Assembly: GCF_048593235.1 (NCBI RefSeq)
Contig: NC_133622.1
Coordinates: 251,228,055-251,292,054, forward strand
Source of the DNA: Sminthopsis crassicaudata
Taxonomy: Eukaryota
DNA length: 64,000 nucleotides
Direction: 5' to 3'
Positions within the stretch are counted from its first letter, which is position 1. Each line of letters opens with the position of its first letter. Of this stretch, positions 1 through 63,313 are shown piece after piece. A program made the position numbers and the translations under genes. The notes under the pieces were generated by a model. The model did no database searches. It was given only the letters and a program-made list of their open reading frames with translations, and was not told the DNA's origin.

Positions 1-3000
1 GAGGCTGGGGCTATCTCAGGGGCTGGGATGCTCTCAGAGGCCAGGACATTCTCAGAGGCTGGGGCTATCTCAGAGGCTGGGGCGTTCTCGGAGGCTGAGA
101 CGTATTCAAAGGCTGGGACAATCTCAGAGGCTGGGACATTCTCAGAGGCTGGGATGCTTCCATTGGCTGGGACCTTCTCAGAGGCCGGGACACTCTCAGA
201 GGCCGGGACGTTCTCAGAGGCTGGGTCTATCTCAGGGGCTGGGATGCTCTCAGAGGCTGGAACATTCTCAGAGGCTGGGGTGTTTTAAGAGGCTGGGGTG
301 TTCTCAGAGGTGCAAGTCAGCTCAGATGCCAGGTTTGAGAACTCTCTCAGAGTCTGGAGTCTTCTCAGAGGCTGGGGTGTTCTGAGAGGCTGGGACTTTC
401 TCAGAGGCTGAGTTGCTCCCATTGGCTGGGACGCACTCAGAGGCCGAGACGTTCTCAGAGGCTGGGACATTCTCAGAGGCAGAAGCCGGGACGTTCTCAG
501 AGGCTGGGACACTCTCAGAGGCTGGGACGCTCTCAGAGATTGGGGTGCTCCAAGAGGCTGGAACATTCTTAGAGGCTGGGGCATTCTCAGAGGCTGGGGT
601 GCTCCCATCGGCTGGGACCTTCTTAGTGGCAGGGACGTTCTCAGAGGCTGGGGTGCTTTCAGAGGCTGGGGTGCTCTCAGAAACTGTGTTGCTCCCATTG
701 GCTGGGACCTTCTCAGAGGCTGGGACGCTCTAAGAGGCTGGGGTTATCTCAGAGGCCAGGACCTTTTCAGAGGCTGTAACGTTCTCAGAGGCTGGGGCTC
801 TCTCAGAGGCCGGGAGGTTCTCAGAGGCAGGGATGCTCTCAGAGGCTGGGACTCTCTCAGAGGCCGGGACACTCTCAGAGTCCGAGACGCTCTTAGAGGC
901 TGGGGCTATCTCAGAGGCTGGGACATTCTCAGAGGCTGGGGCTATCTCAGAGGCCGGGACGTTCTCAGAGGCTGGGGCTATCTCAGAGGCCGGGACGTTC
1001 TCAGAGGCTGGGAGTTTCTCAGAGGCAGGGACGCTCTCAAAGGCTGGGATTTTCTCAGAGGCTGGCATGTTCTCAGAGGCCGGGTTGCTGCCATTGGCTG
1101 GGACCTTCTCAGAGGCTGGGGCTATCTCTGAGGCTGGGACGCTCTCAGAGGCTGGGGCGTTCTCGGAGGCTGAGACGTATTCAAAGGCTGGGACATTCTC
1201 AGAGGCTGGGACATTCTCAGAGGCTGGGATGCTTCCATTGGCTGGGACCTTCTCAGAGGCCGGGACACTCTCAGAGTCTGAGACGCTCTTAGAGGCTGGG
1301 GCTATCTCAGAGGCTGGGGTGCTCTCAGAGGCTGGGGTGCTCTCAGAGGCTGGGGTGTTTTCAGAGGTTGGGGTGTTCTCAGAGGTGCAAGTCAGCTCAG
1401 ATGCCAGGTTTGAGAACTCTCTCAAGAGTCTGGGGTCTTCTCAGAGGCTGGGGTGTTCTGAGAGGCTGGGACGCTCTCAGAGGCTGGGACGTTCTCAGAG
1501 GCTGGGACATTCTCAGAGGCAGAAGCCAGGACGTTCTCAGAGGCTGGGACGCTCTCAGAGATTGGGGTGGTCCAAGAGGCTGGAACATTCTTAGAGGCTG
1601 GGGCATTCTCAGAGGCTGGGGTGCTCCCATCGGCTGGGACCTTCTTAGTTGCAGGGACGCTCTCAGAGGCTGGGGCTATCTCAGAGGCTGGGGTGCTCTC
1701 AGAGACTGTGTTACTCCCATTGGCTGGGATGTTCTCAGAGGCAGGGGCTATCTCAGAGGCCGGGATCTTCTCAGAGGCTGGGACGCTCTAAGAGGCTGGG
1801 GTTATCTCAGAGGCTGGGACGCTCTAAGAGGCTGGGGTTATCTCAGAGGCTGGGGTGCTCTCAGAAACTGTGTTGCTCCCATTGGCTAGGACCTTCTCAG
1901 AGGCTGGGACGCTCTAAGAGGCTGGGGTTATCTCAGAGGCCAGGACCTTTTCAGAGGCTGTAACGTTCTCAGAGGCCAGGAGGTTCTCAGAGGCAGGGAT
2001 GTTCTCAGAGACTGGGGCTATCTCAGAGGCCGGGAGGTTCTCAGAGGCTGGGGCTCTCTCAGAGGCCGGGAGGTTCTCAGAGGCAGGGATGCTCTCAGAG
2101 GCTGGGACTCTCTCAGAGGCCGGGACACTCTCAGAGTCCGAGACGCTCTTAGAGGCTGGGGCTATCTCAGAGGCTGGGGTGCTCTCAGAGGCTGGGGTGT
2201 TTTCAGAGGCCGGGACTTTCTCAGAGGCAGGGACATTCTCAGAGGCTGGGGCTATCTCAGAGGCCGGGACGTTCTCAGAGGCAGGGGCTATCTCAGAGGC
2301 CGGGACGTTCTCAGAGATTGGGGTGCTCCAAGAGGCTGGGATGCTCTCAGAGGCTGGGGTGCTCCCATCGGCTGGGACCTTCTTAGTGGCAGGGACGCAC
2401 TCAGAGGCCGAGACGTTCTCAGAGGCTGGGACATTCTCAGAGGCAGAAGCCGGGACGTTCTCAGAGGCTGGGGTGTTCTGAGAGGCTGGGACGCTCTCAG
2501 AGGCTGGAACATTCTTAGAGGCTGGGGTATTCTCAGAGGCTGGGGTGCTCCCATCAGCTGGGACCTTGTTAGTGGCAGGGATGCTCTCAGAGGCTGGGGT
2601 GCTCTCAGAGACTGTGTTGCTCCCATTGGCTGGGATGTTCTCAGAGTCTGGGGTCTTCTCAGAGGCTGGGGTGTTCCGAGAGGCTGGGGTGCTCTCAGAG
2701 GCTGGGGTGCTCTCAGAGACTGTGTTGCTCCCATTGGCTGGGACCTTCTCAGAGGCTGGGACGCTCTAAGAGGCTGGGGTTATCTCAGAGGCCAGGACAT
2801 TCTCAGTGGCTGGGACAATCTCAGAGGCTGGGGCGTTCTCGGAGGCTGAGACATTCTCAGAGGCTGGGATGCTTCAATTGGCTGGGACCTTCTCAGAGGC
2901 CGGGACACTCTCAGAGGCCGGGACGTTCTTAGAGGCTGGGGCTATCTCAGGGGCTGGGATGCTCTCAGAGGCTGGAACATTCTCAGAGGCTGGGGTGTTT

Positions 3001-6000
3001 TAAGAGGCTGGGGTGTTCTCAGAGGTGCAAGTCAGCTCAGATGCCAGGTTTGAGAACTCTATCAGAGTCTGGAGTCTTCTCAGAGGCTGGGGTGTTCTGA
3101 GAGGCTGGGACTTTCTCAGAGGCTGAGTTGCTCCCATTGGCTGGGACGCACTCAGAGGCCGAGACGTTCTCAGAGGCTGGGACATTCTCAGAGGCAGAAG
3201 CCAGGACGTTCTCAGAGGCTGGGACCTTCTCAGAGGCTGGGACGCTCTAAGAAGCTGGGGTTATCTCAGAGGCCAGGACCTTTTCAGAGGCTGTAACGTT
3301 CTCAGAGGCTGGGGCTCTCTCAGAGGCCGGGAGGTTCTCAGAGGCAGGGATGTTCTCAGAGACTGGGGCTATCTCAGAGGCCGGGAGGTTCTCAGAGGCT
3401 GGGGCTCTCTCAGAGGCCGGGAGGTTCTCAGAGGCAGGGATGCTCTCAGAGGCTGGGACTCTCTCAGAGGCCGGGACACTCTCAGAGTCCGAGACGCTCT
3501 TAGAGGCTGGGGCTATCACAGAGGCTGGGGTGCTCTCAGAGGCTGGGACATTCTCAGAGGCTGGGCTGCTCTCAGAGGCCGCGACGTTCTCAGAGGTTGG
3601 GGCTATCTCAGAGGCCGAGAAGTTCTCAGAGGTTGGGACATTCTCAGAGGCTGGGTTGCACCCATTGGCTGGGACCATGTCAGAGGCAGGGGTGCACTCA
3701 GAGGCTGGGGCTATCTCAGAGGCTGGGGTGTTTTCAGAGGCTGGGGTGCTCTCAGAGGCTGGGGTGTTTTCAGAAGCTGGGGTGTTCTCAGAGGTGCAAG
3801 TCAGCTCAGATGCCACGTTTGAGAACTCTCTCAGAGTCTGGGGTGTTCTGAGAGGCTGGGATGCTCTCAGAGTCTGGGGTGTTCTCAGAGGCTGGGACGT
3901 TCTCAGAGGCTGGGACGTTCTCAGAGGCCGGGACTTTGTCAGAGGCTGGGACGTTTTCAGAGGCTGGGACGTTCTCAGAGGCCGGGACTTTGTCAGAGGC
4001 TGGGACGTTCTCAGAGGCCGGGACACTCTCAGAGTCTGAGATGCTCTTAGAGGCTGGGGCTATCTCAGAGGCTGGGGTGTTTTCAGAGGCTGGGACGTTC
4101 TCAGAGGCCGGGACACTCTCAGAGTCTGAGATGCTCTTAGAGGCTGGGGCTATCTCAGAGGCTGGGGTGTTTTCAGAGGCTGGGGTGCTCTCAGAGGCTG
4201 GGGTGTTTTCAGAGGCTGCGGTGTTCTCAGAGGCTGGGGTGTTCTCAGAGGTGCAAGTCAGCTCAGATGCCACGTTTGAGAACTCTCTCAGAGTCTGGGG
4301 TCTTCTCAGAGGCTGGGGTGTTCTGAGAAGCTGGGACGCTCTCAGAGGCTGGGGTATTCTCAGAGGCTGGGGTGCTTCTATCGGCTGGGACCTTCTTAGT
4401 GGCAGGGACGTTCTCAGAGGCTGGGGTGCTCTCAGAGACTGTGTTGCTCCCATTGGCTGGGACCTTCTCAGAGGCTGGGACGCTCTAAGAGGCTGGGGTT
4501 ATCTCAGAGGCCAGGACATTCTCAGTGGCTGGGGCTATCTCAGAGGCTGGGGCGTTCTCGGAGGCTGAGACGTATTCAAAGGCTGGGACAATCTCAGAGG
4601 CTGGGACATTCTCAGAGGCTGGGACATTCTCAGAGGCTGGGATGCTTCCATTGGCTGGGACCTTCTCAGAGGCCGGGACACTCTCAGAGGCCGGGACGTT
4701 CTCAGAGGCTGGGGCTATCTCAGGGGCTGGGATGCTCTCAGAGGCCAGGACATTCTCAGAGGCTGGGGCTATCTCAGAGGCTGGGGCGTTCTCGGAGGCT
4801 GAGACGTATTCAAAGGCTGGGACAATCTCAGAGGCTGGGACATTCTCAGAGGCTGGGATGCTTCCATTGGCTGGGACCTTCTCAGAGGCCGGGACACTCT
4901 CAGAGGCCGGGACGTTCTCAGAGGCTGGGTCTATCTCAGGGCAGGCTGGGATGCTCTCAGAGGCTGGAACATTCTCAGAGGCTGGGGTGTTTTAAGAGGC
5001 TGGGGTGTTCTCAGAGGTGCAAGTCAGCTCAGATGCCAGGTTTGAGAACTCTCTCAGAGTCTGGAGTCTTCTCAGAGGCTGGGGTGTTCTGAGAGGCTGG
5101 GACTTTCTCAGAGGCTGAGTTGCTCCCATTGGCTGGGACGCACTCAGAGGCCGAGACGTTCTCAGAGGCTGGGACATTCTCAGAGGCAGAAGCCGGGACG
5201 TTCTCAGAGGCTGGGACACTCTCAGAGGCTGGGACGCTCTCAGAGATTGGGGTGCTCCAAGAGGCTGGAACATTCTTAGAGGCTGGGGCATTCTCAGAGG
5301 CTGGGGTGCTCCCATCGGCTGGGACCTTCTTAGTGGCAGGGACGTTCTCAGAGGCTGGGGTGTTTTCAGAGGCTGGGACGTTCTCAGAGGCCGGGACACT
5401 CTCAGAGTCTGAGATGCTCTTAGAGGCTGGGGCTATCTCAGAGGCTGGGGTGTTTTCAGAGGCTGGGGTGCTCTCAGAGGCTGGGGTGTTTTCAGAGGCT
5501 GCGGTGTTCTCAGAGGCTGGGGTGTTCTCAGAGGTGCAAGTCAGCTCAGATGCCACGTTTGAGAACTCTCTCAGAGTCTGGGGTCTTCTCAGAGGCTGGG
5601 GTGTTCTGAGAGGCTGGGATGCTCTCAGAGTCTGGGGTGTTCTCAGAGGCTGGGACGTTCTCAGAGGCTGGGACGTTCTCAGAGGCCGGGACTTTGTCAG
5701 AGGCTGGGACGTTTTCAGAGGCTGGGACGTTCTCAGAGGCCGGGACTTTGTCAGAGGCTGGGACGTTCTCAGAGGCCGGGACACTCTCAGAGTCTGAGAT
5801 GCTCTTAGAGGCTGGGGCTATCTCAGAGGCTGGGGTGTTTTCAGAGGCTGGGACGTTCTCAGAGGCCGGGACACTCTCAGAGTCTGAGATGCTCTTAGAG
5901 GCTGGGGCTATCTCAGAGGCTGGGGTGTTTTCAGAGGCTGGGGTGCTCTCAGAGGCTGGGGTGTTTTCAGAGGCTGCGGTGTTCTCAGAGGCTGGGGTGT

Positions 6001-9000
6001 TCTCAGAGGTGCAAGTCAGCTCAGATGCCACGTTTGAGAACTCTCTCAGAGTCTGGGGTCTTCTCAGAGGCTGGGGTGTTCTGAGAAGCTGGGACGCTCT
6101 CAGAGGCTGGGGTATTCTCAGAGGCTGGGGTGCTTCTATCGGCTGGGACCTTCTTAGTGGCAGGGACGTTCTCAGAGGCTGGGGTGCTCTCAGAGACTGT
6201 GTTGCTCCCATTGGCTGGGACCTTCTCAGAGGCTGGGACGCTCTAAGAGGCTGGGGTTATCTCAGAGGCCAGGACATTCTCAGTGGCTGGGGCTATCTCA
6301 GAGGCTGGGGCGTTCTCGGAGGCTGAGACGTATTCAAAGGCTGGGACAATCTCAGAGGCTGGGACATTCTCAGAGGCTGGGACATTCTCAGAGGCTGGGA
6401 TGCTTCCATTGGCTGGGACCTTCTCAGAGGCCGGGACACTCTCAGAGGCCGGGACGTTCTCAGAGGCTGGGGCTATCTCAGGGGCTGGGATGCTCTCAGA
6501 GGCCAGGACATTCTCAGAGGCTGGGGCTATCTCAGAGGCTGGGGCGTTCTCGGAGGCTGAGACGTATTCAAAGGCTGGGACAATCTCAGAGGCTGGGACA
6601 TTCTCAGAGGCTGGGATGCTTCCATTGGCTGGGACCTTCTCAGAGGCCGGGACACTCTCAGAGGCCGGGACGTTCTCAGAGGCTGGGTCTATCTCAGGGC
6701 AGGCTGGGATGCTCTCAGAGGCTGGAACATTCTCAGAGGCTGGGGTGTTTTAAGAGGCTGGGGTGTTCTCAGAGGTGCAAGTCAGCTCAGATGCCAGGTT
6801 TGAGAACTCTCTCAGAGTCTGGAGTCTTCTCAGAGGCTGGGGTGTTCTGAGAGGCTGGGACTTTCTCAGAGGCTGAGTTGCTCCCATTGGCTGGGACGCA
6901 CTCAGAGGCCGAGACGTTCTCAGAGGCTGGGACATTCTCAGAGGCAGAAGCCGGGACGTTCTCAGAGGCTGGGACACTCTCAGAGGCTGGGACGCTCTCA
7001 GAGATTGGGGTGCTCCAAGAGGCTGGAACATTCTTAGAGGCTGGGGCATTCTCAGAGGCTGGGGTGCTCCCATCGGCTGGGACCTTCTTAGTGGCAGGGA
7101 CGTTCTCAGAGGCTGGGGTGTTTTCAGAGGCTGGGACGTTCTCAGAGGCCGGGACACTCTCAGAGTCTGAGATGCTCTTAGAGGCTGGGGCTATCTCAGA
7201 GGCTGGGGTGTTTTCAGAGGCTGGGGTGCTCTCAGAGGCTGGGGTGTTTTCAGAGGCTGCGGTGTTCTCAGAGGCTGGGGTGTTCTCAGAGGTGCAAGTC
7301 AGCTCAGATGCCACGTTTGAGAACTCTCTCAGAGTCTGGGGTCTTCTCAGAGGCTGGGGTGTTCTGAGAAGCTGGGACGCTCTCAGAGGCTGGGGTATTC
7401 TCAGAGGCTGGGGTGCTTCTATCGGCTGGGACCTTCTTAGTGGCAGGGACGTTCTCAGAGGCTGGGGTGCTCTCAGAGACTGTGTTGCTCCCATTGGCTG
7501 GGACCTTCTCAGAGGCTGGGACGCTCTAAGAGGCTGGGGTTATCTCAGAGGCCAGGACATTCTCAGTGGCTGGGGCTATCTCAGAGGCTGGGGCGTTCTC
7601 GGAGGCTGAGACGTATTCAAAGGCTGGGACAATCTCAGAGGCTGGGACATTCTCAGAGGCTGGGACATTCTCAGAGGCTGGGATGCTTCCATTGGCTGGG
7701 ACCTTCTCAGAGGCCGGGACACTCTCAGAGGCCGGGACGTTCTCAGAGGCTGGGGCTATCTCAGGGGCTGGGATGCTCTCAGAGGCCAGGACATTCTCAG
7801 AGGCTGGGGCTATCTCAGAGGCTGGGGCGTTCTCGGAGGCTGAGACGTATTCAAAGGCTGGGACAATCTCAGAGGCTGGGACATTCTCAGAGGCTGGGAT
7901 GCTTCCATTGGCTGGGACCTTCTCAGAGGCCGGGACACTCTCAGAGGCCGGGACGTTCTCAGAGGCTGGGTCTATCTCAGGGGCTGGGATGCTCTCAGAG
8001 GCTGGAACATTCTCAGAGGCTGGGGTGTTTTAAGAGGCTGGGGTGTTCTCAGAGGTGCAAGTCAGCTCAGATGCCAGGTTTGAGAACTCTCTCAGAGTCT
8101 GGAGTCTTCTCAGAGGCTGGGGTGTTCTGAGAGGCTGGGACTTTCTCAGAGGCTGAGTTGCTCCCATTGGCTGGGACGCACTCAGAGGCCGAGACGTTCT
8201 CAGAGGCTGGGACATTCTCAGAGGCAGAAGCCGGGACGTTCTCAGAGGCTGGGACACTCTCAGAGGCTGGGACGCTCTCAGAGATTGGGGTGCTCCAAGA
8301 GGCTGGAACATTCTTAGAGGCTGGGGCATTCTCAGAGGCTGGGGTGCTCCCATCGGCTGGGACCTTCTTAGTGGCAGGGACGTTCTCAGAGGCTGGGGTG
8401 CTTTCAGAGGCTGGGGTGCTCTCAGAAACTGTGTTGCTCCCATTGGCTGGGACCTTCTCAGAGGCTGGGACGCTCTAAGAGGCTGGGGTTATCTCAGAGG
8501 CCAGGACCTTTTCAGAGGCTGTAACGTTCTCAGAGGCTGGGGCTCTCTCAGAGGCCGGGAGGTTCTCAGAGGCAGGGATGCTCTCAGAGGCTGGGACTCT
8601 CTCAGAGGCCGGGACACTCTCAGAGTCCGAGACGCTCTTAGAGGCTGGGGCTATCTCAGAGGCTGGGACATTCTCAGAGGCTGGGGCTATCTCAGAGGCC
8701 GGGACGTTCTCAGAGGCTGGGGCTATCTCAGAGGCCGGGACGTTCTCAGAGGCTGGGAGTTTCTCAGAGGCAGGGACGCTCTCAAAGGCTGGGATTTTCT
8801 CAGAGGCTGGCATGTTCTCAGAGGCCGGGTTGCTGCCATTGGCTGGGACCTTCTCAGAGGCTGGGGCTATCTCTGAGGCTGGGACGCTCTCAGAGGCTGG
8901 GGCGTTCTCGGAGGCTGAGACGTATTCAAAGGCTGGGACATTCTCAGAGGCTGGGACATTCTCAGAGGCTGGGATGCTTCCATTGGCTGGGACCTTCTCA

Positions 9001-12000
9001 GAGGCCGGGACACTCTCAGAGTCTGAGACGCTCTTAGAGGCTGGGGCTATCTCAGAGGCTGGGGTGCTCTCAGAGGCTGGGGTGCTCTCAGAGGCTGGGG
9101 TGTTTTCAGAGGTTGGGGTGTTCTCAGAGGTGCAAGTCAGCTCAGATGCCAGGTTTGAGAACTCTCTCAAGAGTCTGGGGTCTTCTCAGAGGCTGGGGTG
9201 TTCTGAGAGGCTGGGACGCTCTCAGAGGCTGGGACGTTCTCAGAGGCTGGGACATTCTCAGAGGCAGAAGCCAGGACGTTCTCAGAGGCTGGGACGCTCT
9301 CAGAGATTGGGGTGGTCCAAGAGGCTGGAACATTCTTAGAGGCTGGGGCATTCTCAGAGGCTGGGGTGCTCCCATCGGCTGGGACCTTCTTAGTTGCAGG
9401 GACGCTCTCAGAGGCTGGGGCTATCTCAGAGGCTGGGGTGCTCTCAGAGACTGTGTTACTCCCATTGGCTGGGATGTTCTCAGAGGCAGGGGCTATCTCA
9501 GAGGCCGGGATCTTCTCAGAGGCTGGGACGCTCTAAGAGGCTGGGGTTATCTCAGAGGCTGGGGTGCTCTCAGAAACTGTGTTGCTCCCATTGGCTAGGA
9601 CCTTCTCAGAGGCTGGGACGCTCTAAGAGGCTGGGGTTATCTCAGAGGCCAGGACCTTTTCAGAGGCTGTAACGTTCTCAGAGGCCAGGAGGTTCTCAGA
9701 GGCAGGGATGTTCTCAGAGACTGGGGCTATCTCAGAGGCCGGGAGGTTCTCAGAGGCTGGGGCTCTCTCAGAGGCCGGGAGGTTCTCAGAGGCAGGGATG
9801 CTCTCAGAGGCTGGGACTCTCTCAGAGGCCGGGACACTCTCAGAGTCCGAGACGCTCTTAGAGGCTGGGGCTATCTCAGAGGCTGGGGTGCTCTCAGAGG
9901 CTGGGGTGTTTTCAGAGGCCGGGACTTTCTCAGAGGCAGGGACATTCTCAGAGGCTGGGGCTATCTCAGAGGCCGGGACGTTCTCAGAGGCAGGGGCTAT
10001 CTCAGAGGCCGGGACGTTCTCAGAGATTGGGGTGCTCCAAGAGGCTGGGATGCTCTCAGAGGCTGGGGTGCTCCCATCGGCTGGGACCTTCTTAGTGGCA
10101 GGGACGCACTCAGAGGCCGAGACGTTCTCAGAGGCTGGGACATTCTCAGAGGCAGAAGCCGGGACGTTCTCAGAGGCTGGGGTGTTCTGAGAGGCTGGGA
10201 CGCTCTCAGAGGCTGGAACATTCTTAGAGGCTGGGGTATTCTCAGAGGCTGGGGTGCTCCCATCAGCTGGGACCTTGTTAGTGGCAGGGATGCTCTCAGA
10301 GGCTGGGGTGCTCTCAGAGACTGTGTTGCTCCCATTGGCTGGGATGTTCTCAGAGTCTGGGGTCTTCTCAGAGGCTGGGGTGTTCCGAGAGGCTGGGGTG
10401 CTCTCAGAGGCTGGGGTGCTCTCAGAGACTGTGTTGCTCCCATTGGCTGGGACCTTCTCAGAGGCTGGGACGCTCTAAGAGGCTGGGGTTATCTCAGAGG
10501 CCAGGACATTCTCAGTGGCTGGGACAATCTCAGAGGCTGGGGCGTTCTCGGAGGCTGAGACATTCTCAGAGGCTGGGATGCTTCAATTGGCTGGGACCTT
10601 CTCAGAGGCCGGGACACTCTCAGAGGCCGGGACGTTCTTAGAGGCTGGGGCTATCTCAGGGGCTGGGATGCTCTCAGAGGCTGGAACATTCTCAGAGGCT
10701 GGGGTGTTTTAAGAGGCTGGGGTGTTCTCAGAGGTGCAAGTCAGCTCAGATGCCAGGTTTGAGAACTCTATCAGAGTCTGGAGTCTTCTCAGAGGCTGGG
10801 GTGTTCTGAGAGGCTGGGACTTTCTCAGAGGCTGAGTTGCTCCCATTGGCTGGGACGCACTCAGAGGCCGAGACGTTCTCAGAGGCTGGGACATTCTCAG
10901 AGGCAGAAGCCAGGACGTTCTCAGAGGCTGGGACCTTCTCAGAGGCTGGGACGCTCTAAGAAGCTGGGGTTATCTCAGAGGCCAGGACCTTTTCAGAGGC
11001 TGTAACGTTCTCAGAGGCTGGGGCTCTCTCAGAGGCCGGGAGGTTCTCAGAGGCAGGGATGTTCTCAGAGACTGGGGCTATCTCAGAGGCCGGGAGGTTC
11101 TCAGAGGCTGGGGCTCTCTCAGAGGCCGGGAGGTTCTCAGAGGCAGGGATGCTCTCAGAGGCTGGGACTCTCTCAGAGGCCGGGACACTCTCAGAGTCCG
11201 AGACGCTCTTAGAGGCTGGGGCTATCACAGAGGCTGGGGTGCTCTCAGAGGCTGGGACATTCTCAGAGGCTGGGCTGCTCTCAGAGGCCGCGACGTTCTC
11301 AGAGGTTGGGGCTATCTCAGAGGTCGAGAAGTTCTCAGAGGTTGGGACATTCTCAGAGGCTGGGTTGCACCCATTGGCTGGGACCATGTCAGAGGCAGGG
11401 GTGCACTCAGAGGCTGGGGCTATCTCAGAGCCCAAGAGGTTCTCAGAGGCTGGGGCTTTCTCAGAGGCTGGGATGTTCTCAGAGGCTGGGATTTTGTCAG
11501 CGGCTGGGGTGCTCCCATTGGCTGGGACTTGTTAGTGGCAGGGACGCTCTGAGAGGCTGGGGCTATCTCAGAGGCCGAGACGTTCTCAAAGGCTGAAATG
11601 TTCTCAGAGGCTGGGGCTATCTTAGAGGCTGCGACTTTCTCAGAGGTTGGGACGTTCTTAGAGTCTGGGTTGCACCCATTGGCTGGGACCATGTCAGAGG
11701 CAGGGATGCACTCAGAGGCTGGGGTTATCTCAGAGGCCGAGTGGTTCTCAGAGGCCGGGAGGTTCTCAGAGGCAGGGACGCTCTCAGAGGCTCGGACTAT
11801 CCCAGAGGCTGGGACTTTTTCAGAGGCTGGAACGTTCTCAGAGGCTTGAGTGTTCTCAGAGGCTGGGTTGCTCCCATTGGCTGGGACCTTCTCAGAGGCT
11901 GGAATGTTCTCAGAGGCTGGGACGCTCTCAGAGGCTGGGGCTAGCTCAGAGGCTGGGACATTCTCAGAGGCTGAGATGTTCTCAGAAGCTGGGGCTATCT

Positions 12001-12990
12001 CAGAGCCCAGGATGTTCTCAGAGGCTGGGACGTTCTCAGAGGCTGGGGCTATCCCAGAGGCTGGGACTTTCTCAGAGGCTGGGGTGTTCTGAGAGGCTGG
12101 GGTGCTCTCAGAGGCTGTGTTGCTCCCAGAGTCTTGGTTGCTCCTATTGGCTGGAACATTCTCAGAGGCTGGGGTGCTCTCAAAGACTGAGGTGCTCCAA
12201 GAGGCTGGCACATTCTTAGAGGCTGGGTTGTTCTCAGAAGTTGGGTTGCTCCCATTGCCTGGGACCTTCTCAGAGGCTGGCACATTCTTAGAAGCTGCGG
12301 TTATCTCCAAGGCCAGGACATTCTCAGAGGCTATAATGTTCTCAGAGGCTGGGGCTATCTCAGAAGCTGGGGCGTTCTCAGAGGCTGGTACATTCTCAGA
12401 AGTGGAAGTTATCTCAGATGCCAGATTTGAGAACTCTGTCAGAGCCTGGGGTGTTCTCAGAGGCTGTGACGTTCTCAGAGGCTATGACGTTCTCAGAGAC
12501 TGTGGTGCTCTCAGAGGCTGGGGTGTTCTCAGACTCTGGGTTGTTCCTAGAGCCTAGAACATTCTCAGAGGCTGGGATGTTCTTAGAGGCTGGGGTGTTC
12601 AGCCTCTAAGTAAGCTCAGATGCCAAATTTGAGAACTCTCTCAGAGGCTGGGGCGTTCTCAGAGGCTGTGATGTTCTCAGAGGCTGGGATGTTCTCAGAG
12701 GCTGGGGTGCTCTCAGAGGCTGGGGTGTTCTCAGATGCTGGGTTGCTCCCAGAGGCTGGAACATTCTCAGAGGCTGGGGCGTTCTTAGAGGCTGGGATGT
12801 TCTTAGAGGCTGGGGTGCTCTCAGAGGCTGGGTTGTTCTCAGAAGCTGGGGTGCTCTCAGAGGCTGGGGTGTTCTCAGAGGCTGGGGCATTCTCAGAGTC
12901 TGGGCATTCTGAGAGGTGATCATTCTCTCAGAAGTGGGGGTGCTCTGGGAAGCTGGGGAGCTTTCAGAGGCCAGGTTGCCATGCCTTCTC
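1..12990. repeat. Large 18-bp-unit minisatellite array (consensus about GAGGCTGGGACGTTCTCA), continuing beyond the left edge of the window
   Basis: The unit is visible continuously from base 1. Variant units include GAGGCTGGGGCTATCTCA, GAGGCTGGGGTGTTCTCA and TTGGCTGGGACCTTCTCA. Units become increasingly diverged after about 11,430 and fade by about 12,990. The repeated SEAGTF / SENVPA / LRTSQP ORFs come from this unit. Confidence 0.97.
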
Positions 12991-13054
12991 AGAGGCCTGC
13001 TGGTCTCCATGGAGATAGATCAGGATCTGTCTGATAGAAGTTCTGAAAGGGGGG

Positions 13055-21401
<8,347 letters not shown>

Positions 21402-24399
21402 ACAGAGCTGCAAGCTGCCCGAAGTCATCAAGCCGAGTACGGGAGGGGGGTTACCCAGGGCCCAGGGTTAAATGGGAAAGAGGGAGAGAGGGAAAAATGA
21501 AATTATTGTATTTAAGCCCAGCGTCTGCTTTCCTGCCCAGCCAGAGTCCTTGGGAGCTTGGGGTCTATAGGGGGAAGTGAGCAGAAATGACAGGTACTTG
21601 ATGGTGAGGGCTTGCCAAATTCAGAGGGAGGCCTGGGTTCTTTGTCAGAGCCAGTGGCAAGGACAATCTCGATGCTCCTTAGCCCTCTGGCCTGGCCCCC
21701 GTTCCTGTGGAATCCAGAACTCCCTCGCCCCAACTTAGAGATCTCTCGGGCTTCAAATCCTATATGGAAGGAGAAGCTCCTCTATGGTTTACAAAAGAAG
21801 AAACTGAGGTACATGGAGGCAGAGAGATCTTGTACTGCATCACAGGAAAGTAAGGAGATGGTTCCATAAAAAGGCATTTAGGAAAAAAAGACAACATAGC
21901 GGGATAGTGAACTTCATCGAACCATACGAATTCATGTATTAACTTCCAGTGGGTGTGGTACCAAGGAGACAGCAAATAAAGTCCTTGCTTTACTAATGGA
22001 GGGTTACAAAGGAACCACACAGAACTGACAACACGCTCAGGGCATCCCAGGCATATAAAAATGGGAGTCAGGAAGGCCTGGGTTCCCTTCTCACTTGAGA
22101 CTAATTCTGTGAGTTTGGGTAAATCTGTTAAAGCAGAGGATTGGTCCCCTTCTGGCTCCAAATTAATGATCTGAAGTGAAGATCCAGCCAGCAGGATCAG
22201 GAAAGACTTTTTGAGGGAGGGGGGAATTTAATTTGGGCTTAAAAGGTCAGGATTCTCCCTGATCCTTTAAAGGTGAAAGGTAGGGCAGGCTGGTGTTCAG
22301 CAAAGGAACATGCAGACATAAAAAAGTGGAAAGGACTGTATGGTGGTGAGATCTTGCAGGCCCAAAGGATTATTTATACAATACGTAGAATCCTAGCTCG
22401 CCACTGAAACACTCCAGAGGAGAAAGTGAGACTGGCGGCTTTGCCCAGCCCTGCCTCGCTTCAATTCAATCCACTTGTATGTCACAGTACCACCTCCCGG
22501 GGTCATAGTCCCCTTTAAGAACAAAGAACAAATCACAAAATCTCTTCAGAGGCCGCCTCATCTAACATTCTGAGGGGGGAATGAGATCAAGTGATTTGCC
22601 AAAAGACCCCAACAAGTAACATTAAGACAACTGGAGATGGCCCTGGAGACGGTGGGAGTTTGGGACGGACACCCATTAAGAAATAAAAAAAAAATGTCCT
22701 TTATACATATGAAATCCTGCAAAACATCCACATTAGTCACTCCCAACGCATTGGTGATGTTGCTGATAGTATCAACCCTCACATCTTCCTCCAGTGTCTA
22801 CATCTGGGGAGGAGGTAACCAGGGCTCAGTTGGCAAAGCTCATTGTGGTGGGGCAGAGATTTTGACCTCGGCAGCTATCGGGAACTACAGAATTTCATTA
22901 AATGATTGGTTAAAACAAGATTACAGATGGGGAATGGCTCCAATCCTCCCTGAACTGAGGGCAGGCTTCATGAAGCTGGTATTAGCATTGCCTCCCCTGG
23001 CCAGTTCTGCTGGGCTGGGAAGTATCCAACGTCATTGATACTTGAAACAATATTGATTCAATACAATCTGATAGCAGACTTCATTGCTGGAGCAAGGGGC
23101 AGTCCCAGAAGGTTCTGAGAGGAAGTGAGATCTTGGGCCATAGGATTCGGAACCACCTTCCTGGACTCCAGAAGAGCCAAACTTCCAGGACTTCACAGTC
23201 ATAACTCTTACCATCCCTCAGAGGAGAGTCTTATGAGGATTTAGGGAAAAGTTCGTGCTGGGGACGTCCAAATGTTCTTTGGTTGGTTGGTCTCTTCAAT
23301 AATGAAGTGGCCTTTGCATCCTGGGCCCCTTCCGTTCAGGTCCTCCCAAGGTTCACAAGAGGCCCGCCTGGATGTTGAAAGCCTCCATCCCCCGAAAGGC
23401 GTTCACCCATCTCCGTCACACAAGTCTCCAATGATGCCCTTTGGGGCAGTTTGGGCTCTTTAGCTGCCACAGTCCGATCACACCCGCCCCTTCTGAGATC
23501 CCTGTGGTGATGCTGCTCTTTAGGTCTTCAGAGGCAATGTCTTCTCACACAGACCGGTGGGGGCTGAAGAAATCGGTCCTTTGCTGTCATGGGAAACAAG
23601 GTCGGTAAAAGCCATTTCCCAGAAACAACTTTCAGATCTGGATCTGGATCCAGAAGGTGGCTGTGCCGTCTCCCTCAGATACATATTGTTGGGCAGGTTC
23701 TGTAGGTCCTGTGGACACCGCCAGCCTTTAACGATCTGATTTTTTCCCCCTTGGATAGTCTCTTCCAGGAGATGCAACGGTGGGGTTGACTCAACGTGTC
23801 ACCCTCAAGCAGGGACATCAAAAAGACTTAACCATTCACAAGGGGATCCTTCCTGAAGGCCCCGGGGCGGGTCAGAAAGGCGAATGTTGGTGGCAAGAAC
23901 ACAGCTGCCTATTTTTTGTCTCTGGGTGTTTCTGATCAGAAGGGGCTGAATTAATCTCAGATCTAAGAATTCTTGAATGAGGTTCACCTAATGAAGTGGC
24001 AGGAGTGAAGGGGTGGGGCTCTATTTCAGTGGAATGCTCTAAAATCCACAACAATGAAATCTTTTTTCACAACTTTCAGTCAATTGCTGACAGAGGCTTA
24101 TTCCCTTTTAAAGCCCACAGGTGCAGATGAGTGCGGGCAGACCGCTAGAGAGGAGCCTGATTCCATGTTTTGTTCCAGACCTTTGGTATCCCTCCTTGCT
24201 CCATAAATAATTCCTAATTGAGTCCTTCCGTTCAAAAATGAAAAGGACGGAGGGAACTCTCCTCCGCACAAATCTAACTCAACATTTCCTGGGCAAGGCC
24301 ACAAAAAGGCCCGGGCGTCCTCATTACGGAGCCCCTTGTGTGCAATCGGAAGGGTAGGGCCCCCCACAAGGGCCCGCGGCATGAAGGCTGCGGGAGGGA

Positions 24400-24866
24400 G
24401 CACGGTGGCTGCCAAGGGGCAAAGCTGCTAAAGGGGCGTCCACAGAGGCCGCAGAACGTTTCCCGGGCCGCACATGCGCACCCGCCGCACTCCAGGCGAC
24501 ATCTTTCGAGCACACAAAGGGTCTCGGCTGAAGCCACCAGAGACCTTAAGCAGTCCCAGGTGCCTGGTGACGCATGCGTATTTCGGTCCGGATGCGGAGT
24601 GGAGTGGAGTGGGGGAGGGGGGAGGAGCTAGGCTCAGCCCGGGAAGAGAGGCACGACGGAGAAAGCGCAGTGACGAGTTTACGCCGGAAGCTTCAGGCCT
24701 AACTTCCTGTCGGGCGTTGGACCAGAGGACCAGAGCACAACGGAAACGGCGCCCATAGGTTTCCGGCAACAGCCGCCGAGGGGCGGCCTGTAACCCGGAA
24801 GCGCTCCCATTCTGCGTCTGGGCCCGGCGGTGACGGCGGCCGGGGTTCGGTGGGAGCGGAGCCGCC
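24400..24866 (+). promoter_or_regulatory. SART1 CpG-island promoter / 5' UTR
   Basis: CpG-rich region with NRF1-like CACATGCGCA (24471) and palindromic CGCATGCG (24571). Several ETS/GABP-type CCGGAAG / ACTTCC motifs lie at about 24684-24800. Kozak context GCCGCCATGG at the start codon. Confidence 0.75.
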
Positions 24867-27800
24867 ATGGGCTCCTCGAAAAAGCACCGCGGGGAGAAGG
24901 AGGCGGCGGCGGGGACCGGAGCGGGGACAGCGGGGAGCTCGGGCACAGGCACAGCGGAGCAGGCACCGCGGCACCGCGAGCATAAGAAGCACAAACACCG
25001 CAGCGGGGGCGGCGGCAGCGGGAGCGGCGGGGGCGGGGCCGGCGAGCGGCGCAAGCGCAGCCGGGAGCGCGGGGCCGAGAGGGGGAGCAGCCGGCGAGGG
25101 GGCGAGGCCGAGGCCCGCAACGGGAGCGCGCACGGGCGCGAGCGTAGCCAGGCTGAGCCTGCGGAGCGAAGAGTGAAGCGAGAGAAGCGCGATGACGGCT
25201 ACGAAGCTGGTGAGCGCGAGGCTCGAGGGGCCCAAGGGGCGGGTCTGGGCCTGGGAAGGGCCAATGGGGAGGCGGGGCCGAGGAGGCCGGAGTGAGGCGG
25301 GGCCAATGAACGGCAGGGGGTTGAGCCTGTCCGCCCCAATGGGCCTGTAAGAAAGCTCCTCGAAGCTGGGGGAGGGGGGTTGTCTGCTCTATCCCAGACA
25401 TTTTCCTACTCGAATTACTTCAAATCCACAAATGTTAGTTCCCTTCTCCTGCGTTTGACGCTTGGGGAAACTGAGGATCTGAGAGGGGAAGTGAATGTCA
25501 AAGGCCAGGGGAAGGGAGGACGTGCCTGAGAAAGGCCTAGAGCGGGCCTGGCGCTGTACAGAAAAAGCAGCCCCTGCCCTCCTGGGTTTACAGACAAAGA
25601 GGCTCCAGGCAGAATAACTGGGAAACGAGGGAAGGAGGCTTCCTGGGGGGGGGATTTAATCGGGACTTAAAGGAAGCTGGGCGCCTCAGTAGGAGGAAGG
25701 AGAGCCTGCCTGGTCTGGTACAGCCAGAGAAGGTCCACGATTAGGAGCGGCAGCCAGGAGGCAAAAGGAGGGGGAGGGGAGGGGAGAGAAGACTTTGGTT
25801 CCCAGGCAGAGGACTTGGTGTTCCACCCGGTGCAGTGGGTGCCCCTGGAGCTGGTGGAGTAGTGGGGGGCATGCATGACCTGGGGGGAGGCGGGCACAGT
25901 ATGAGGGAGAAAGGGGACTGTTTGGGAGGTGTTGTTGCAGAGGTGACATTGACAGGCCTTGGATTTTGTGTTTGCCCCTGGAGGTGAGGGATTTCAGTTA
26001 GATGGAGTGAAAGATCCCTCCCGGCTCTCAAGTGAGGAAGTCGTGTCATGTGACCCCAAATCTGGATCTGTCTCTACTCCTGGACCCAGTTCCACAAAGC
26101 TCCTTCAGCTGTGACTGGGCTTGGCCAAAACTTGGCTCTTGCCTTCACTTCATCCCCGTGAAACCTTAGATAAATTTGATAAATGCAGTAAATGTAAACC
26201 GGACGAAGGGTCAGAGAGGAAAGATTGTCAATGAGCAGAAAAGCGTTCTCAGAGAACTAGGACACGTAAGTTTGACTTTAAAGGATGAGAAGGAATGCAG
26301 GAAGGGAGAGGCCTGGAAGCTGCAGGTAGACCGGGATGATGGATAGTTGTTTGGTGGAGAACAGTGTGAGGAAAGACAAAAAATGGGCCATTAGGAGCTG
26401 TCCGAGCAGAAAGAACTCTACACGTGCTTCACGGTCTGTGAGGAATGATTGGAGGGTTTTGACTCGAACGATAACTTGCTTTTATCTAAAATGCCACAGA
26501 GTCACAAAATGTTTTCCTTAGCAACAACTCTGTGAGAGAGGGAGCATCTTAGCACCATTTTACATGTGGAGAAGTTAGAGCTCAGAAAGGTGAGATTGGC
26601 TTGCCAGAGGTCATGGGGGCACTGGGGGTGGCAGCCGTCGACAGGACTGCTGGTCTTCAGTGGGACTCTTGCTTAGTTAGAGACAGGACTGGAGATCCCT
26701 TTCAAGTGAGAGCAGTCTGTCCCCCGTCCGAACTCTTTTATGCGTTGGTAATGAAACATTTCTCGCCTCCAACTCTTAATTCATTCTCTGCCGGGACCTT
26801 GGGGAAGGTGCCTTGATGCCAGGAAGAGAAAAGCTGGGTTGGGGAGCTAAAGAAGTTTTTGCCCATTTCCTAAGTGGGCTGGAAAGCAAGATGTAATGAG
26901 CAGGAAGTGAACGTAGCCTTCTTGCCTGTGTTAGGGGCTGTCCTGACTTTGGGGCCTCCAGCTCTCCGAGGAGCCTCTTCTTTGAACCCTGGTCAGGATG
27001 CCCTCGAAGCAGCACAGGTCCGGAGAGCGCTCCTCAACCTTTGACTTTTATCGTCCTTCTTGTTCCAGCCTCCAGCTCCAAGGCCAGCTCTGGAGATGCC
27101 TCATCTCTCAGCATTGAGGAGACCAAGTGAGTGCCTGCCTGGGATGATCAGGCTCAGCCCTGCCTTCCTCTGACCTTTTCCAGCGCAGCGTTGTGCTGAT
27201 GGACCCAAGGAGGCCCAATTCTTGGTGCTTCCAAATTAGTGCAGAGCAGCCTCTCCCCAATCTCTTTTCTTCTTGGGCAGCTGCAGAATTTGGCTGCCTC
27301 ATAACCATGGCTATCTCTTGTTTTCAGTAAACTCCGAGCCAAGTTGGGACTCAAACCTTTGGAGGTTAATGCTGTTAAGAAGGGTGAGTGATGGGAGACA
27401 GGCTGACTACTGAGGGAGGGCCTTGGGGTCTGGAAGCAGCACAGAGCAAAGGCCAGAACGGGTGAACTGAGGGCGTTGTCCTGCGGGAGACAGGGTCAAG
27501 GCTGCAAAATGAGTAGGTGCAGACTCGGGTTTCTGGAGAGATCAGAGCTGTGGGTGAGCCAGCCCTGGGGGTGGGAATGATTCACCAAGCTGGAACGGGG
27601 GGGGGGGCCAGGGGTCACCATCCCCGGGCCTTTCCTTCCAGAAGCGGCGGGCACCAAGGAGGAGCCAGTGCTGGCCGACGTGATCAACCCCTTGGCCTTG
27701 CGGCAGCGTGAGGAGCTGCGTGAGAAGCTGGCGGCGGCCAAGGAGAAGCGTCTCCTCAACCAGAAGCTGGGGTGAGTGGAGAAAGCCTCTGGGGGTGGGT

Positions 27801-45700: not shown

Positions 45701-45993
45701 NNNNNNNNNNNNNNNNNNNNNNNNNNNNNNNNNNNNNNNNNNNNNNNNNNNNNNNNNNNNNNNNNNNNNNNNNNNNNNNNNNNNNNNNNNNNNNNNNNNN
45801 NNNNNNNNNNNNNNNNNNNNNNNNNNNNNNNNNNNNNNNNNNNNNNNNNNNNNNNNNNNNNNNNNNNNNNNNNNNNNNNNNNNNNNNNNNNNNNNNNNNN
45901 NNNNNNNNNNNNNNNNNNNNNNNNNNNNNNNNNNNNNNNNNNNNNNNNNNNNNNNNNNNNNNNNNNNNNNNNNNNNNNNNNNNNNNNNNNNNN
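45701..45993. other. Assembly gap (293 N)
   Basis: Run of N. Confidence 1.
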
Positions 45994-48588
45994 NGGGAGG
46001 TAGGAGGAAGAGAAAATAAATGCTTGTTAATTGCAAAAACAACTTTTTCCAAAAAGAATGATCTTTCTGTAATAAAACCCAGCTTCACTCATGTCCGACT
46101 TTTTGTGACCCATTTGGACTTTTCTTGCCATTTCCTCCTTCTTTTCATTTTACAGATAAGTAAACTGAGGCAAGCAGGGTGAAGTGACTTGTCCAGGCTC
46201 GCCCGGCCAGGAGGTGCCCGTGGCCACTCGCAGAGACCCAGCGGCTCATTTCAGCAGATTCAGCCCCTGGCGAGAAGGGGGAGAGTCCCCGGCCCGTTCT
46301 GCTGAGCTTTGGGCGATGAGAGTGGCTGCTTGAGACTGTGTCTTTTGGTCCCTTATTAAGGAGGAAAGGGCTCTGGGTTTGACTGTCGGGGCGGGAAGCT
46401 CAGGGCCCCCCTTCCCTGGAAGGCTTCCTCCTCCCTCTGCAGTCTCCCCTCTCCTGACTGGCCTCGGGACCCAAAGTGTTTCTGGGACCAGGCTGGGCCA
46501 GGTCGTCCTCTTTCTTTCCCCACTGGAAGAGCAAGCTGAGGTCCCAGCCCAGAAAACTCCTGGACTGCCAGCTGTTTCCGGGGTGCAAGTGGGAGAAAAC
46601 CCCTGCTCTTTGGGGGGCCGAGGCCGTGGCTGCCCTCTGTCCTGATTTGGGCTCTTTGAGCCACAAGGGACACATTCTTCCTTGGCAGATGGGGAACCGG
46701 AGGCCCGCGAGGAGTCAGGAGGGAAGCTCGGCCTTGGGTGCTAGGCTGCTCCCGTTCTCCCGTGTCTCGTCCTCCATCTTTGTAAGCCCCCCTCAGATGT
46801 CCATCCTGTGAGTCTCCTCAGGCCCCGCCCTCGCAGACAGTAATCACAGGGTCACTGGGGCCTGAATCCTGCCAGGCTCCTGGCGCCTGCGAGTGGGAAC
46901 CACCCCTTTAGGAGGAAGGGGATTCGTGACCCGGGGAGTGGATGGGGGATAAAATAGAACAACAACAAAGAAAACAAGGGCCTGGGCCCCCCAGCCTGCA
47001 AAGGGCCTTCCTCATGTGAGGATGGAGAAGACCCTTACCCAAGATGACTACTCAGAGATCACTCAGTAGAAGGCAGAAGTTTATTGAAAATCTCCGGAGG
47101 ATGAGCCCTCCGCTTTCCTGGGATCCTCTTCTGCCCTTTGGGTTTCCCAAGCCCCGTTGGGGCTCTGAGAGAGAAGGTGGAAGACTTGGATTTCTCTCCA
47201 GATTACTGAAGGGAAGAAGCCAGCTTGGGGGTCGGCAGCCCCCCCACATCCCTCTCCCTGGCTTGCTCTCTCTTGGAGATCCGGGGCTTTCCCGTGAGGA
47301 GCAAGCTCATTGGGCCCCCGGGGGCTTTGGGCTGGGGCTGCAATGGCTTCAGAGCAGTGAAGACCACGGCATCTCCTGCCGGACACGTGGACATCACGGG
47401 GAACGTCACTCAGCACAAGACCTGGGAATCGGGGCCGAATCAATGCACCAAGGCTATAAGCCTTGCTGTGGGACATGGGAAGTCAGGGCACCTGGCGGCG
47501 AAGGAGGCTGCCCGGCCCTCCCGGAGGAAAGCTCGGCTCCCCAAAAGCAGCTTCGGTAGCGGGAGGCAGGTTGGAGTCAGGGACCCTGGATTCGAATCGT
47601 CAACTGCCAGTGGCAGCTTTATGTCTCCGAGCATGTCCCTGGACCAAACCTGTCCTCAGTTTACCTCTTTGGGGGCTTTGCCAAAACCATCTCTCAGTTC
47701 CCTTTGGGCTCTAAATTCTAGGAGCAGCCCCTCCCCCCTGGCAGAGCCATCGAGCTTGGGCCCAAAGAACGGGCACCCCCGGGGGCGCAGGAAGCGCCCA
47801 ATGGAGGCTGGCTCCTTGGCGTCTCCCAGGGTTCCACCTGTCCCCCTCCTCCATCGTAGGGGCCAAAGGTCAGTTCTGAGAGGACCAGGGCCGGGGTGGG
47901 GGCCCTCATCCCAAACCTGGCCGCTCTCCCCCTGCGTCTGGGGGATCAGGCAGCCAGCATTGAGTGATCACCGTGTGCCCTGAGGATGCTCAGGCTCCCA
48001 GGCTCCTCCTCCTGGAACGGGGCATGGGAGAATATTCCTGGGCTCTGCTGCTTGGAGTCAGAATCTGGGCGACGTCACCAGGTTGCTTATTAGGGGTCTG
48101 TATCAGTAAACCTGAGGCTGCTGCTTCTCCTGGGTGATAAGTCCCACAATGTCTGCCTGTGTGGGTGACTGGGATATTAGCTGCACACTCCCCAGTTTCC
48201 CACATCCGTGTATGGATGGACACTGTTTTGTAAGTGCTCTCAGGAGGTGGAATGGTCACCCCTACAGTGCCTGGAGGCAAGGGATCCATAGGCTGGAGAG
48301 GAGCAGATTTCACCCCTGAAAGGGGGAGCCCCCTCCCGCTCCGGGGGCTCTGGGAGGGGGGGCCGAGGGCCCAGGGTGCTGCGTTCCAGGAGGAGGGAGA
48401 CAGGAACAGTAGTTTCCATCCAGCCCGAGGCTGGGGAGGGAGGCGGCCCAGGACCTGTCGGGCAGCTCCTAGGGGTGGAGAAGGAGGGGGAGGGGACTCC
48501 CCGGCGCCCGGGGGTGGGGCTCCCAGAGCAGGTAAAAGGCTCTGGCCGGCCTGCTCCCCTGAGCTCCCAAGGCCTGCCCATAGCCGAG

Positions 48589-59216: not shown

Positions 59217-59610
59217 CTTGAAAAGGAACTCTGGAACTGACACGAGAGTGACAGATGATTGGCCTGGGTACCTCCAGACCCGGTTCTTCTCGCCCTCCCC
59301 AACCTCTCATCCGCAACTCTCCTTACCTCAGTTCATTCAATGGACTTGTGGGGTCTCACATTCTGTGGAGGGACCTGGTTGTTTCCAGGGAGACGGTTCT
59401 GTGATGTAAGGCCTGGCTCCTTCCACTAGAGTGCCTTTCACAGAATCCTAGAATCTCAGAGAACATCAAAGGTCACCAGAACCTGGCAAATCGTCATCTA
59501 TAATCTTGCTGACCTCTAGGAAAGGGAGCGCAATGATAATGCACTCAGGAAGGTCTGAGTTCAAATTTGGCCTCACATTCGCTGTGCCCCCCAGTGCATC
59601 AGTAGGAATA

Positions 59611-63130: not shown

Positions 63131-63313
63131 NNNNNNNNNNNNNNNNNNNNNNNNNNNNNNNNNNNNNNNNNNNNNNNNNNNNNNNNNNNNNNNNNNNNNN
63201 NNNNNNNNNNNNNNNNNNNNNNNNNNNNNNNNNNNNNNNNNNNNNNNNNNNNNNNNNNNNNNNNNNNNNNNNNNNNNNNNNNNNNNNNNNNNNNNNNNNN
63301 NNNNNNNNNNNNN
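63131..63313. other. Assembly gap (183 N)
   Basis: Run of N. Confidence 1.

Follow-up and report, generated by a model that had tools for sequence, protein, structure and literature searches.

Hypervariable GC-rich minisatellites are well known from human (MS1/D1S7, MS32 and CEB1) and mouse (Ms6-hm and Hm-2), and promoter-proximal VNTRs that affect expression include the INS VNTR, the CSTB dodecamer and the MAOA uVNTR. Published descriptions of the CEB1/CEB25 minisatellites (PMC3486850), the BORIS/CTCFL promoter minisatellite (PMC4973313) and a genome-wide survey of VNTRs (PMC8096271) served as points of comparison for the array described here, which lies upstream of TSGA10IP in the dunnart Sminthopsis crassicaudata. 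Like the hypervariable minisatellites, the dunnart array has a short GC-rich unit, strand asymmetry, hundreds of head-to-tail copies and interspersed variants; arrays of that class reach tens of kb, and turnover by unequal exchange or conversion is a likeness that we infer for this locus. Unlike them, it shows a three-level higher-order structure, a punctuation element and exact copies of several kb. Such an order is met with more often among satellite higher-order repeats. With alpha satellite and macrosatellites the array shares nested periods, near-identical interior copies and diverged edges, whereas its unit is only 18 bp and it occupies a single intergenic locus rather than a centromeric or heterochromatic block. 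With promoter VNTRs it shares a place directly upstream of a gene start; in contrast to them, it is longer by one to two orders of magnitude, and the part that adjoins the gene is an old, stable edge.

The window that we analysed is a stretch of 64,000 nucleotides. Tandem Repeats Finder, run on this 64-kb window, reported an array of period 18 at 1-12916 (708 copies, 71% matches, 3% indels, score 7295-9138), with a size and regularity far above chance expectation. An earlier note on this DNA had described such an array, of at least 13 kb, upstream of TSGA10IP, and it is indeed present, open at its left end. The strict register, delimited by Tandem Repeats Finder, spacing and phase analysis and per-position variation, covers 1-12895 and continues past the left end of the window. 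The distance between successive anchors was exactly 18 bp in 499 of 600 spacings. With this period and 708 head-to-tail copies, the array falls among minisatellites, whose units measure 10-100 bp. The unit has the consensus GAGGCTGGGACGTTCTCA and a conserved core, TCTCAGAGGCTGGG, and its centre is a hypervariable 4-nt stretch. We counted 105 distinct 18-mers among the 499 units of exact length, the variation being concentrated at positions 10-13, and the interspersion of variant repeat units that is characteristic of minisatellites is thus seen. Two scans of metagenome contigs for exact runs of two or three consecutive units, meant to pick up host DNA of other marsupials, gave no match. GC content was 0.58-0.60 and GC skew +0.22 to +0.26 along the full length, with 550 G-runs as against 41 C-runs, and the G skew runs in the direction of TSGA10IP transcription.

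The first coding exon of TSGA10IP lies on the plus strand at 13055-13222 (168 nt, 56 codons, phase 0), followed by the donor GTAAGA at 13223. The peptide that it encodes showed 100% identity to residues 1-56 of XP_074130117.1 (P0005), TSGA10IP isoform X2 of Sminthopsis crassicaudata, 89% to Antechinus and, in beaver, 40% to the N-terminus (E 1e-5). Conservation of this N-terminus extends to Antechinus, devil and beaver, and the same ATG starts the protein in the public models of three dasyurids, an agreement with no bearing on UTR exons. Each exon was searched or compared by itself, and the public protein was in turn placed on the window. With P0005 and P0001 as queries, local tblastn against the window minus 16580-16618 gave coding exons spanning 13596-21398, all on the plus strand. 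Exons 2 (13596-13723) and 3 (13806-14226) were delimited with splice sites read, and the remaining coding exons, at 14614-14829, 15459-15587, 17981-18154, 19133-19243, 20428-20556 and 21324-21398, have approximate ends. Exon 3 matched Antechinus TSGA10IP in a HMMER search (E 7e-76), and found no match in a word-index protein search in which the candidates were only proteins of similar length. The identity of the exon to the RefSeq dunnart protein, together with the HMMER and tblastn matches, upholds the assignment of the gene to TSGA10IP. The ORF starting at 24867 we take to be SART1-like, from its recognised sequence and the expected gene order. Our literature search returned no paper connecting TSGA10IP with a minisatellite.

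Between the strict register and the gene, sequence reading, a consensus scan and local alignments revealed six decayed terminal units of 17-25 bp at 12896-13011, one of which, a 25-bp unit at 12967-12991, resembles the 25-bp portion of the punctuation element described below. The degenerate units that the earlier note had placed at about 12962 and about 12985 are recognisable, and such units reach to about 13011. The same note had let the array end about 60 bp before the ATG, which agrees to within about 15 bp with the measured gap of 43 bases (roughly 45). Its further statement, that no unique promoter sequence separates array and gene, nearly stands, the exception being 13012-13054 on the plus strand. 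When aligned to the array units, these 43 bases had no copy in the array (best local alignment 22/43), and they are the sole unique sequence before the ATG, presumably the leader or core-promoter region of TSGA10IP.

The context of the ATG itself is strong, with G at both -3 and +4, and an in-frame stop, TAG, lies upstream at 13016. Two further plus-strand ATGs occur within the last degenerate units, at 12981 (a 17-codon ORF ending at 13034) and at 13009 (an ORF of 38 codons that runs across the main ATG in a different frame). The in-frame stop and these upstream ATGs argue for a short leader, since the two ATGs would be expected to burden any longer one. A gap of only 43 unique bases before a conserved start codon likewise points to transcription starting at the array edge. 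Should no exon precede exon 1, the core promoter would have to lie on the decayed units at the end of the array. Four small runs, the nature of which is guessed, contained 0.52-0.57 of the sampled words of 12917-14950, where the coding exons alone would give about 0.40 by arithmetic from the tblastn coordinates; more than the coding exons may therefore be transcribed.

We compared internal copies by ungapped window scans and exact-run searches, which found exact duplications with lengths of 3578, 1774 and 879 bp. The largest involves a multi-kb block present at 1-3614 (copy A, which may continue beyond the left edge) and again at 7746-11323 (copy A'). Global alignment of the two gave 3578 matched bases and no substitutions, window-wise identity being 1.00 and the first mismatch falling at 3615/11324. 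Their only difference is a 36-bp, two-unit indel at 1769-1804, and they are kept apart by 4.1 kb of differing structure. Within the interior, a higher-order repeat with a period of 1758 bp is present in 2.0 exact copies at 3838-7369 (3838-5611 equals 5596-7369), with a third, partial exact copy (4063-4941 equals 7104-7982). Copies offset by 1758 bp and by 7745/7709 bp were 100% identical, as against 71% between units, so that the long periodicities are far more identical than neighbouring basic units, as in higher-order-repeat satellites. Phase analysis and sequence reading also revealed a punctuation element of about 43 bp in 15 copies, one at 319-366 and others near 1397, 3037, 3806, 4263, 5029, 5546, 6021, 6787, 7304, 8067, 9142, 10746, 12414 and 12616. 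Within it lie a unit of 25 bp and a short fragment of a unit in inverted orientation (GTTCTCA ... TGAGAAC), and it moves the 18-bp phase by +7. At the gene-proximal side, 11324-12916 forms an old, unhomogenised edge whose best internal match is 0.75-0.79. Exact copies of several kb that differ by a two-unit indel are, in themselves, an indirect sign of very recent turnover.

The CpG observed/expected ratio was 0.24-0.29 in the array interior, 0.10 at the edge (12001-13000) and 0.37-0.40 at the 5' end of TSGA10IP (13001-14000); the SART1 CpG island, included as a positive control, gave 0.92-0.94. By a criterion of about 0.6 observed/expected with high GC, no CpG island is present in the array or in 13001-14000. 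The CpG content of the array is at the level of the bulk genome, which would suggest that it is methylated in the germline and is not an active regulatory region, and the decay at the edge suggests that this part is methylated and inactive in the germline.

How the array should be read depends on several alternatives. Its period of 18 corresponds to six codons, the consensus lacks stops in all three plus-strand and two minus-strand frames, and a 134-aa minus-strand ORF begins at 13010, features that would suit a present or recent coding hexapeptide repeat, either of a minus-strand gene (ATG at about 13010) or as an N-terminal extension of TSGA10IP. We give this reading almost no credence. No frame of either strand stays open for more than 353 aa, the array shifts phase 18 times, about three types of length-changing event are in frame (24, 33 and 39 bp) as against four out of frame (25, 44, 53 and 71 bp), and the in-frame TAG at 13016 stands between the array and the TSGA10IP ORF. 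Stops of the TGA-bearing minus-strand frame are spread evenly over the three frames (204, 290 and 228). The ORFs of the array had no Pfam, Rfam or protein relatives, and an Rfam scan of 1-16500 found no known RNA families. A coding tandem repeat of the mucin-like or hexapeptide kind was rejected, there being no maintained frame, no bias towards in-frame indels and no protein relatives or domains. The size and internal order of a real array could, on the other hand, be partly artefactual. Assembly is known to go wrong at tandem repeats, and the presence of a 3.58-kb block twice without substitutions points either to very recent turnover of the array or to an assembly that is wrong in part. In the latter case the identical 3.58-kb and 1.77-kb copies would be false duplications, either haplotypes placed in tandem or loops of a repeat graph, and the absence of substitutions across 3578 bp, against a difference of about 29% between neighbouring 18-bp units, is what such errors would produce. 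We nevertheless consider this improbable, as a clean two-unit indel distinguishes the large copies, which have 4.1 kb of different structure between them, the periods of one unit, 1758 bp and about 7.7 kb are nested in the manner of homogenised higher-order arrays, and the old edge and its junction to unique sequence are unambiguous.

The remaining alternatives concern the relation of the array to the gene. Every unit resembles a 3' splice acceptor (TTCTCAG followed by AG or G), which leaves room for an upstream non-coding exon; transcription would start there, the array would be intronic, and the exon at 13055 would be entered through an acceptor in the last units. The last acceptor-like site, at about 12985-12993, is 60 bp before the ATG, and the edge has neither a TATA-like element nor a CpG island. 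A first intron made entirely of acceptor-like units would, however, be expected to mis-splice, and the three dasyurid models begin the protein at the 13055 ATG, although they are silent on UTR exons; we regard an intronic array as improbable, to the same degree as the assembly artefact. Slightly less doubtful, though still unlikely, is that the array forms part of the TSGA10IP promoter and that testis expression is tuned by its length or by its chromatin or R-loop state, an effect that promoter VNTRs have at other loci. About 45 bp lie between the end of the array and a conserved ATG, the 14-nt unit core is strongly conserved over about 700 repeats, and the GC skew of +0.22 to +0.26 lies in the sense of transcription. 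The human survey describes an enrichment of common VNTRs at transcription start sites and a correlation of VNTR genotype with the expression of 187 genes (PMC8096271), which favours such a role. Against it, copy number is stable in the promoter-proximal 1.6 kb and recent changes all lie at least 1.6 kb upstream, the CpG values suggest a methylated, inactive germline state, and simple counts showed no enrichment of known motifs (8 perfect GAS sites, 2 CRE half-sites), nothing convincing emerging for GAS, CRE or GATA. The 14-nt core could nonetheless be conserved because a factor binds it, and not through homogenisation alone, and the strong G skew along transcription also resembles that of R-loop-forming or pause elements. 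We think it very unlikely that, in the dunnart lineage, an actively turning-over, G-skewed minisatellite has taken the place of the whole DRAP1-TSGA10IP interval and has work to do in the male germline. In that event the array could terminate DRAP1 transcription and shield TSGA10IP as an R-loop or pause zone or, alternatively, be a repeat-built promoter or enhancer in which the 14-nt core recruits a factor and length acts as a heritable dial on a sperm gene.

We consider it probable, instead, that this giant, non-coding, GC-rich and G-skewed minisatellite of the DRAP1-TSGA10IP intergenic interval turns over out of register, with a frozen edge beside TSGA10IP and a largely neutral bulk. It would lengthen and shorten through out-of-register exchange on three nested levels, by unequal crossing-over, gene conversion or replication slippage. 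These levels are the single unit, as in the 36-bp indel; the 1758-bp higher-order repeat, bounded by the 43-bp punctuation element; and the block of about 7.7 kb. The interior would be undergoing homogenisation, and the 1.6 kb adjoining the gene would be an old, frozen and CpG-decayed edge. If exon 1 is the first exon, TSGA10IP, a CpG-poor testis gene, would initiate at the last degenerate units or immediately beyond them, from a proximal promoter of very small extent. Most of the array would, in all likelihood, be a neutral consequence of repeat dynamics that serves at most as a spacer between DRAP1 and TSGA10IP and does not set the level of expression.

The present value of the locus is descriptive, as an unusually large and cleanly layered minisatellite set hard against a conserved start codon. 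Its layers look dated, a frozen, CpG-decayed edge contrasting with interior copies of several kb without a substitution, and it is a useful test locus for assembly accuracy. If the promoter does lie in an array of varying length, the dunnart would offer a natural system for the study of how a gene functions beneath a mutable upstream repeat of tens of kb, and for the question of whether the activity of a sperm gene is tuned by repeat length.

Tandem Repeats Finder reported one array at positions 1-12916, with a period of 18 bp, 708 copies, 71% matches and 3% indels (score 7295-9138). The array continues past the window's left boundary, with 13 kb of it visible. Units were anchored via a conserved octamer and the anchor-to-anchor spacings were counted (n=600); 499 of the 600 spacings were exactly 18 bp, and the remainder were mostly 36 or 54 bp. 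Each unit combines a 14-nt core that is conserved (TCTCAGAGGCTGGG) with a 4-nt centre that is hypervariable and includes the CpG, and 105 distinct 18-mers were present among 499 units. Composition was even throughout, with a GC content of 0.58-0.60 and a plus-strand GC skew of +0.22 to +0.26. The strict 18-bp register stops at 12895, and six degenerate units of 17-25 bp each continue beyond this point to ~13011. The two degenerate units that the earlier note had quoted as preceding the TSGA10IP ATG were found among these six. The following 43 bases (13012-13054) are without counterpart in the array, the best alignment matching at 22/43. Comparison of 1-16500 with Rfam gave no family match, and consecutive array units sought in metagenome contigs gave none either. 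A solitary 18-mer at 17405-17422, in an intron of TSGA10IP, matches the array consensus at 15/18 positions and the last units of the array at 17/18. The scan covered 50 kb on both strands, for which our own binomial estimate predicts ~0.03 such chance matches; the 18-mer may be either a remnant or a seed of an array unit.

An 18-bp period corresponds to six codons, and five of the six frames of the consensus lack stops, so we took seriously the reading of the array as a coding repeat. This reading was rejected, with tests of frame, phase, indels and relatives all standing against it. No open frame in the array exceeds 353 codons, 722 minus-strand stops are distributed near-evenly across the three frames, and the register shows 18 phase changes. 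When length changes were counted as independent types and not as copies, ~3 were in frame (24, 33 and 39 bp) compared to 4 out of frame (25, 44, 53 and 71 bp). A minus-strand ORF of 134 aa that begins at 13010 had neither relatives nor domains, and between the array and the TSGA10IP reading frame lies an in-frame TAG at 13016. The array is under no coding constraint.

The 18-bp register is broken by an insert of ~43 bp, here called the punctuation element, which includes a 25-bp unit as well as a short unit fragment in inverted orientation. Its 15 copies split the array into blocks of ~0.2-1.6 kb. Larger copies were also detected: an exact higher-order repeat with a period of 1758 bp and 2.0 copies (3838-5611 equals 5596-7369), an exact partial copy (4063-4941 equals 7104-7982), and a multi-kb duplication in which 1-3614 corresponds to 7746-11323 with 0 substitutions across the 3578 bases aligned and a single clean indel of two units (36 bp). 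Since there are zero differences over 3.6 kb, and if a textbook-order rate of ~1e-8 substitutions per base per generation is assumed, the large duplication would be at most a few tens of thousands of generations old, provided that the assembly is right. The gene-proximal 1.6 kb of the array (11324-12916, the edge) finds its best match elsewhere in the array at only 0.75-0.79 identity, and its CpG observed/expected ratio is 0.10, compared to 0.24-0.29 in the interior. Tandem arrays classically show this combination of a homogenised middle and a frozen edge.

Family scans and a word-index protein search did not provide a name for the exons beside the array. A full HMMER search with exon 3 returned as its best match the 'testis-specific protein 10-interacting protein' of Antechinus flavipes (E 7e-76, 92% identity), whose cluster includes a Tasmanian devil protein and XP_074130117.1, the RefSeq isoform X2 of TSGA10IP from Sminthopsis crassicaudata. 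The first coding exon spans 13055-13222, with the ATG at 13055 and its GT donor at 13223. Its translation shows 100% identity to XP_074130117.1 over residues 1-56, 89% identity to Antechinus and 40% identity to the beaver N-terminus (E 1e-5). Since the exon matches the dunnart, Antechinus and beaver N-termini, these alignments identify ATG 13055 as the annotated TSGA10IP start codon, and as an old one. Mapping of public proteins onto the window, in which 16580-16618 was left out, placed nine coding exons within 13055-21398. Exon 3 carries a short 18/24-bp tandem repeat at 14097-14152, encoding an acidic Q/E/G/D-rich stretch whose length varies among the dunnart, Antechinus and devil proteins. 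Isoform X2 of the dunnart (434 aa) has a different tail and ends soon after the exon at 19133-19243. The C-terminal exons of the Antechinus and devil proteins are present in the dunnart at 20428-20556 and 21324-21398, and a full-length dunnart isoform is expected because they look intact. An older devil model from MetaClust (P0006, 588 aa) diverges from the RefSeq model after residue ~455 into a 3' read-through tail, which is probably a mis-prediction. A search of the literature gave no paper linking TSGA10IP to a minisatellite.

Further downstream, an ORF opens at ATG 24867 inside a clear CpG island (24001-25500; observed/expected 0.59-0.94, GC up to 0.68). We take this ORF to be the first exon of SART1, named by sequence recognition and expected gene order and not by search, and the locus is thus the expected DRAP1-TSGA10IP-SART1 neighbourhood. 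The window also contains a second minisatellite at 59604-60740, in which an AT-rich 30-bp unit is repeated 37.9 times with 88% matches and without indels, and two runs of N, at 45701-45994 (294 bases) and 63131-63313 (183 bases).

With the SART1 island as internal positive control, the CpG analysis showed no CpG island at the 5' end of TSGA10IP (observed/expected 0.37-0.40, compared to 0.92-0.94 at SART1). Lack of an island is in keeping with a testis-restricted gene, and very short promoters are common among genes of this type. With low probability, transcription begins at an upstream non-coding exon and the array is an intron of TSGA10IP, since every array unit is acceptor-like (TTCTCAG then AG). 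Only 43 bases of unique sequence precede the ATG, whose context is strong. The last degenerate units contain two upstream ATGs, at 12981 and 13009, the latter overlapping the main ATG out of frame, and a leader extending further into the array would for this reason be penalised. The simplest reading of the short unique sequence and the upstream-ATG penalty would start transcription between ~12950 and 13054 and put the core promoter onto the terminal decayed array units. The proposal in the earlier note that the start site and core promoter lie in or at the repeat is plausible for the array edge. Four small runs, contig-only and of guessed type, contained a fraction of 0.52-0.57 of the words sampled from 12917-14950, and by our arithmetic from the exon coordinates the coding exons alone would account for ~0.40. 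The excess is a hint, and no proof, that more than the coding exons is transcribed.

The further suggestion that array length tunes TSGA10IP expression is weakened by the anatomy of the locus. All recent change is confined to sequence 1.6 kb or more upstream of the ATG, past the stable old edge. CpG depletion of the array matches the bulk genome, which is what germline-methylated DNA, rather than an active element, would be expected to show.

The array has the unit size, the tandem order and the variant units of a minisatellite, and it is also organised as a higher-order-repeat array; it tested negative both as a coding repeat and as a CpG-island promoter. VNTRs near transcription start sites form a known class, and some of them correlate with expression (PMC8096271, PMC4973313). 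The dunnart array is notable for its scale (13 kb seen), its clean nesting and its placement directly next to a start codon that is conserved. It is an unusually large example of an already known kind, the minisatellite.
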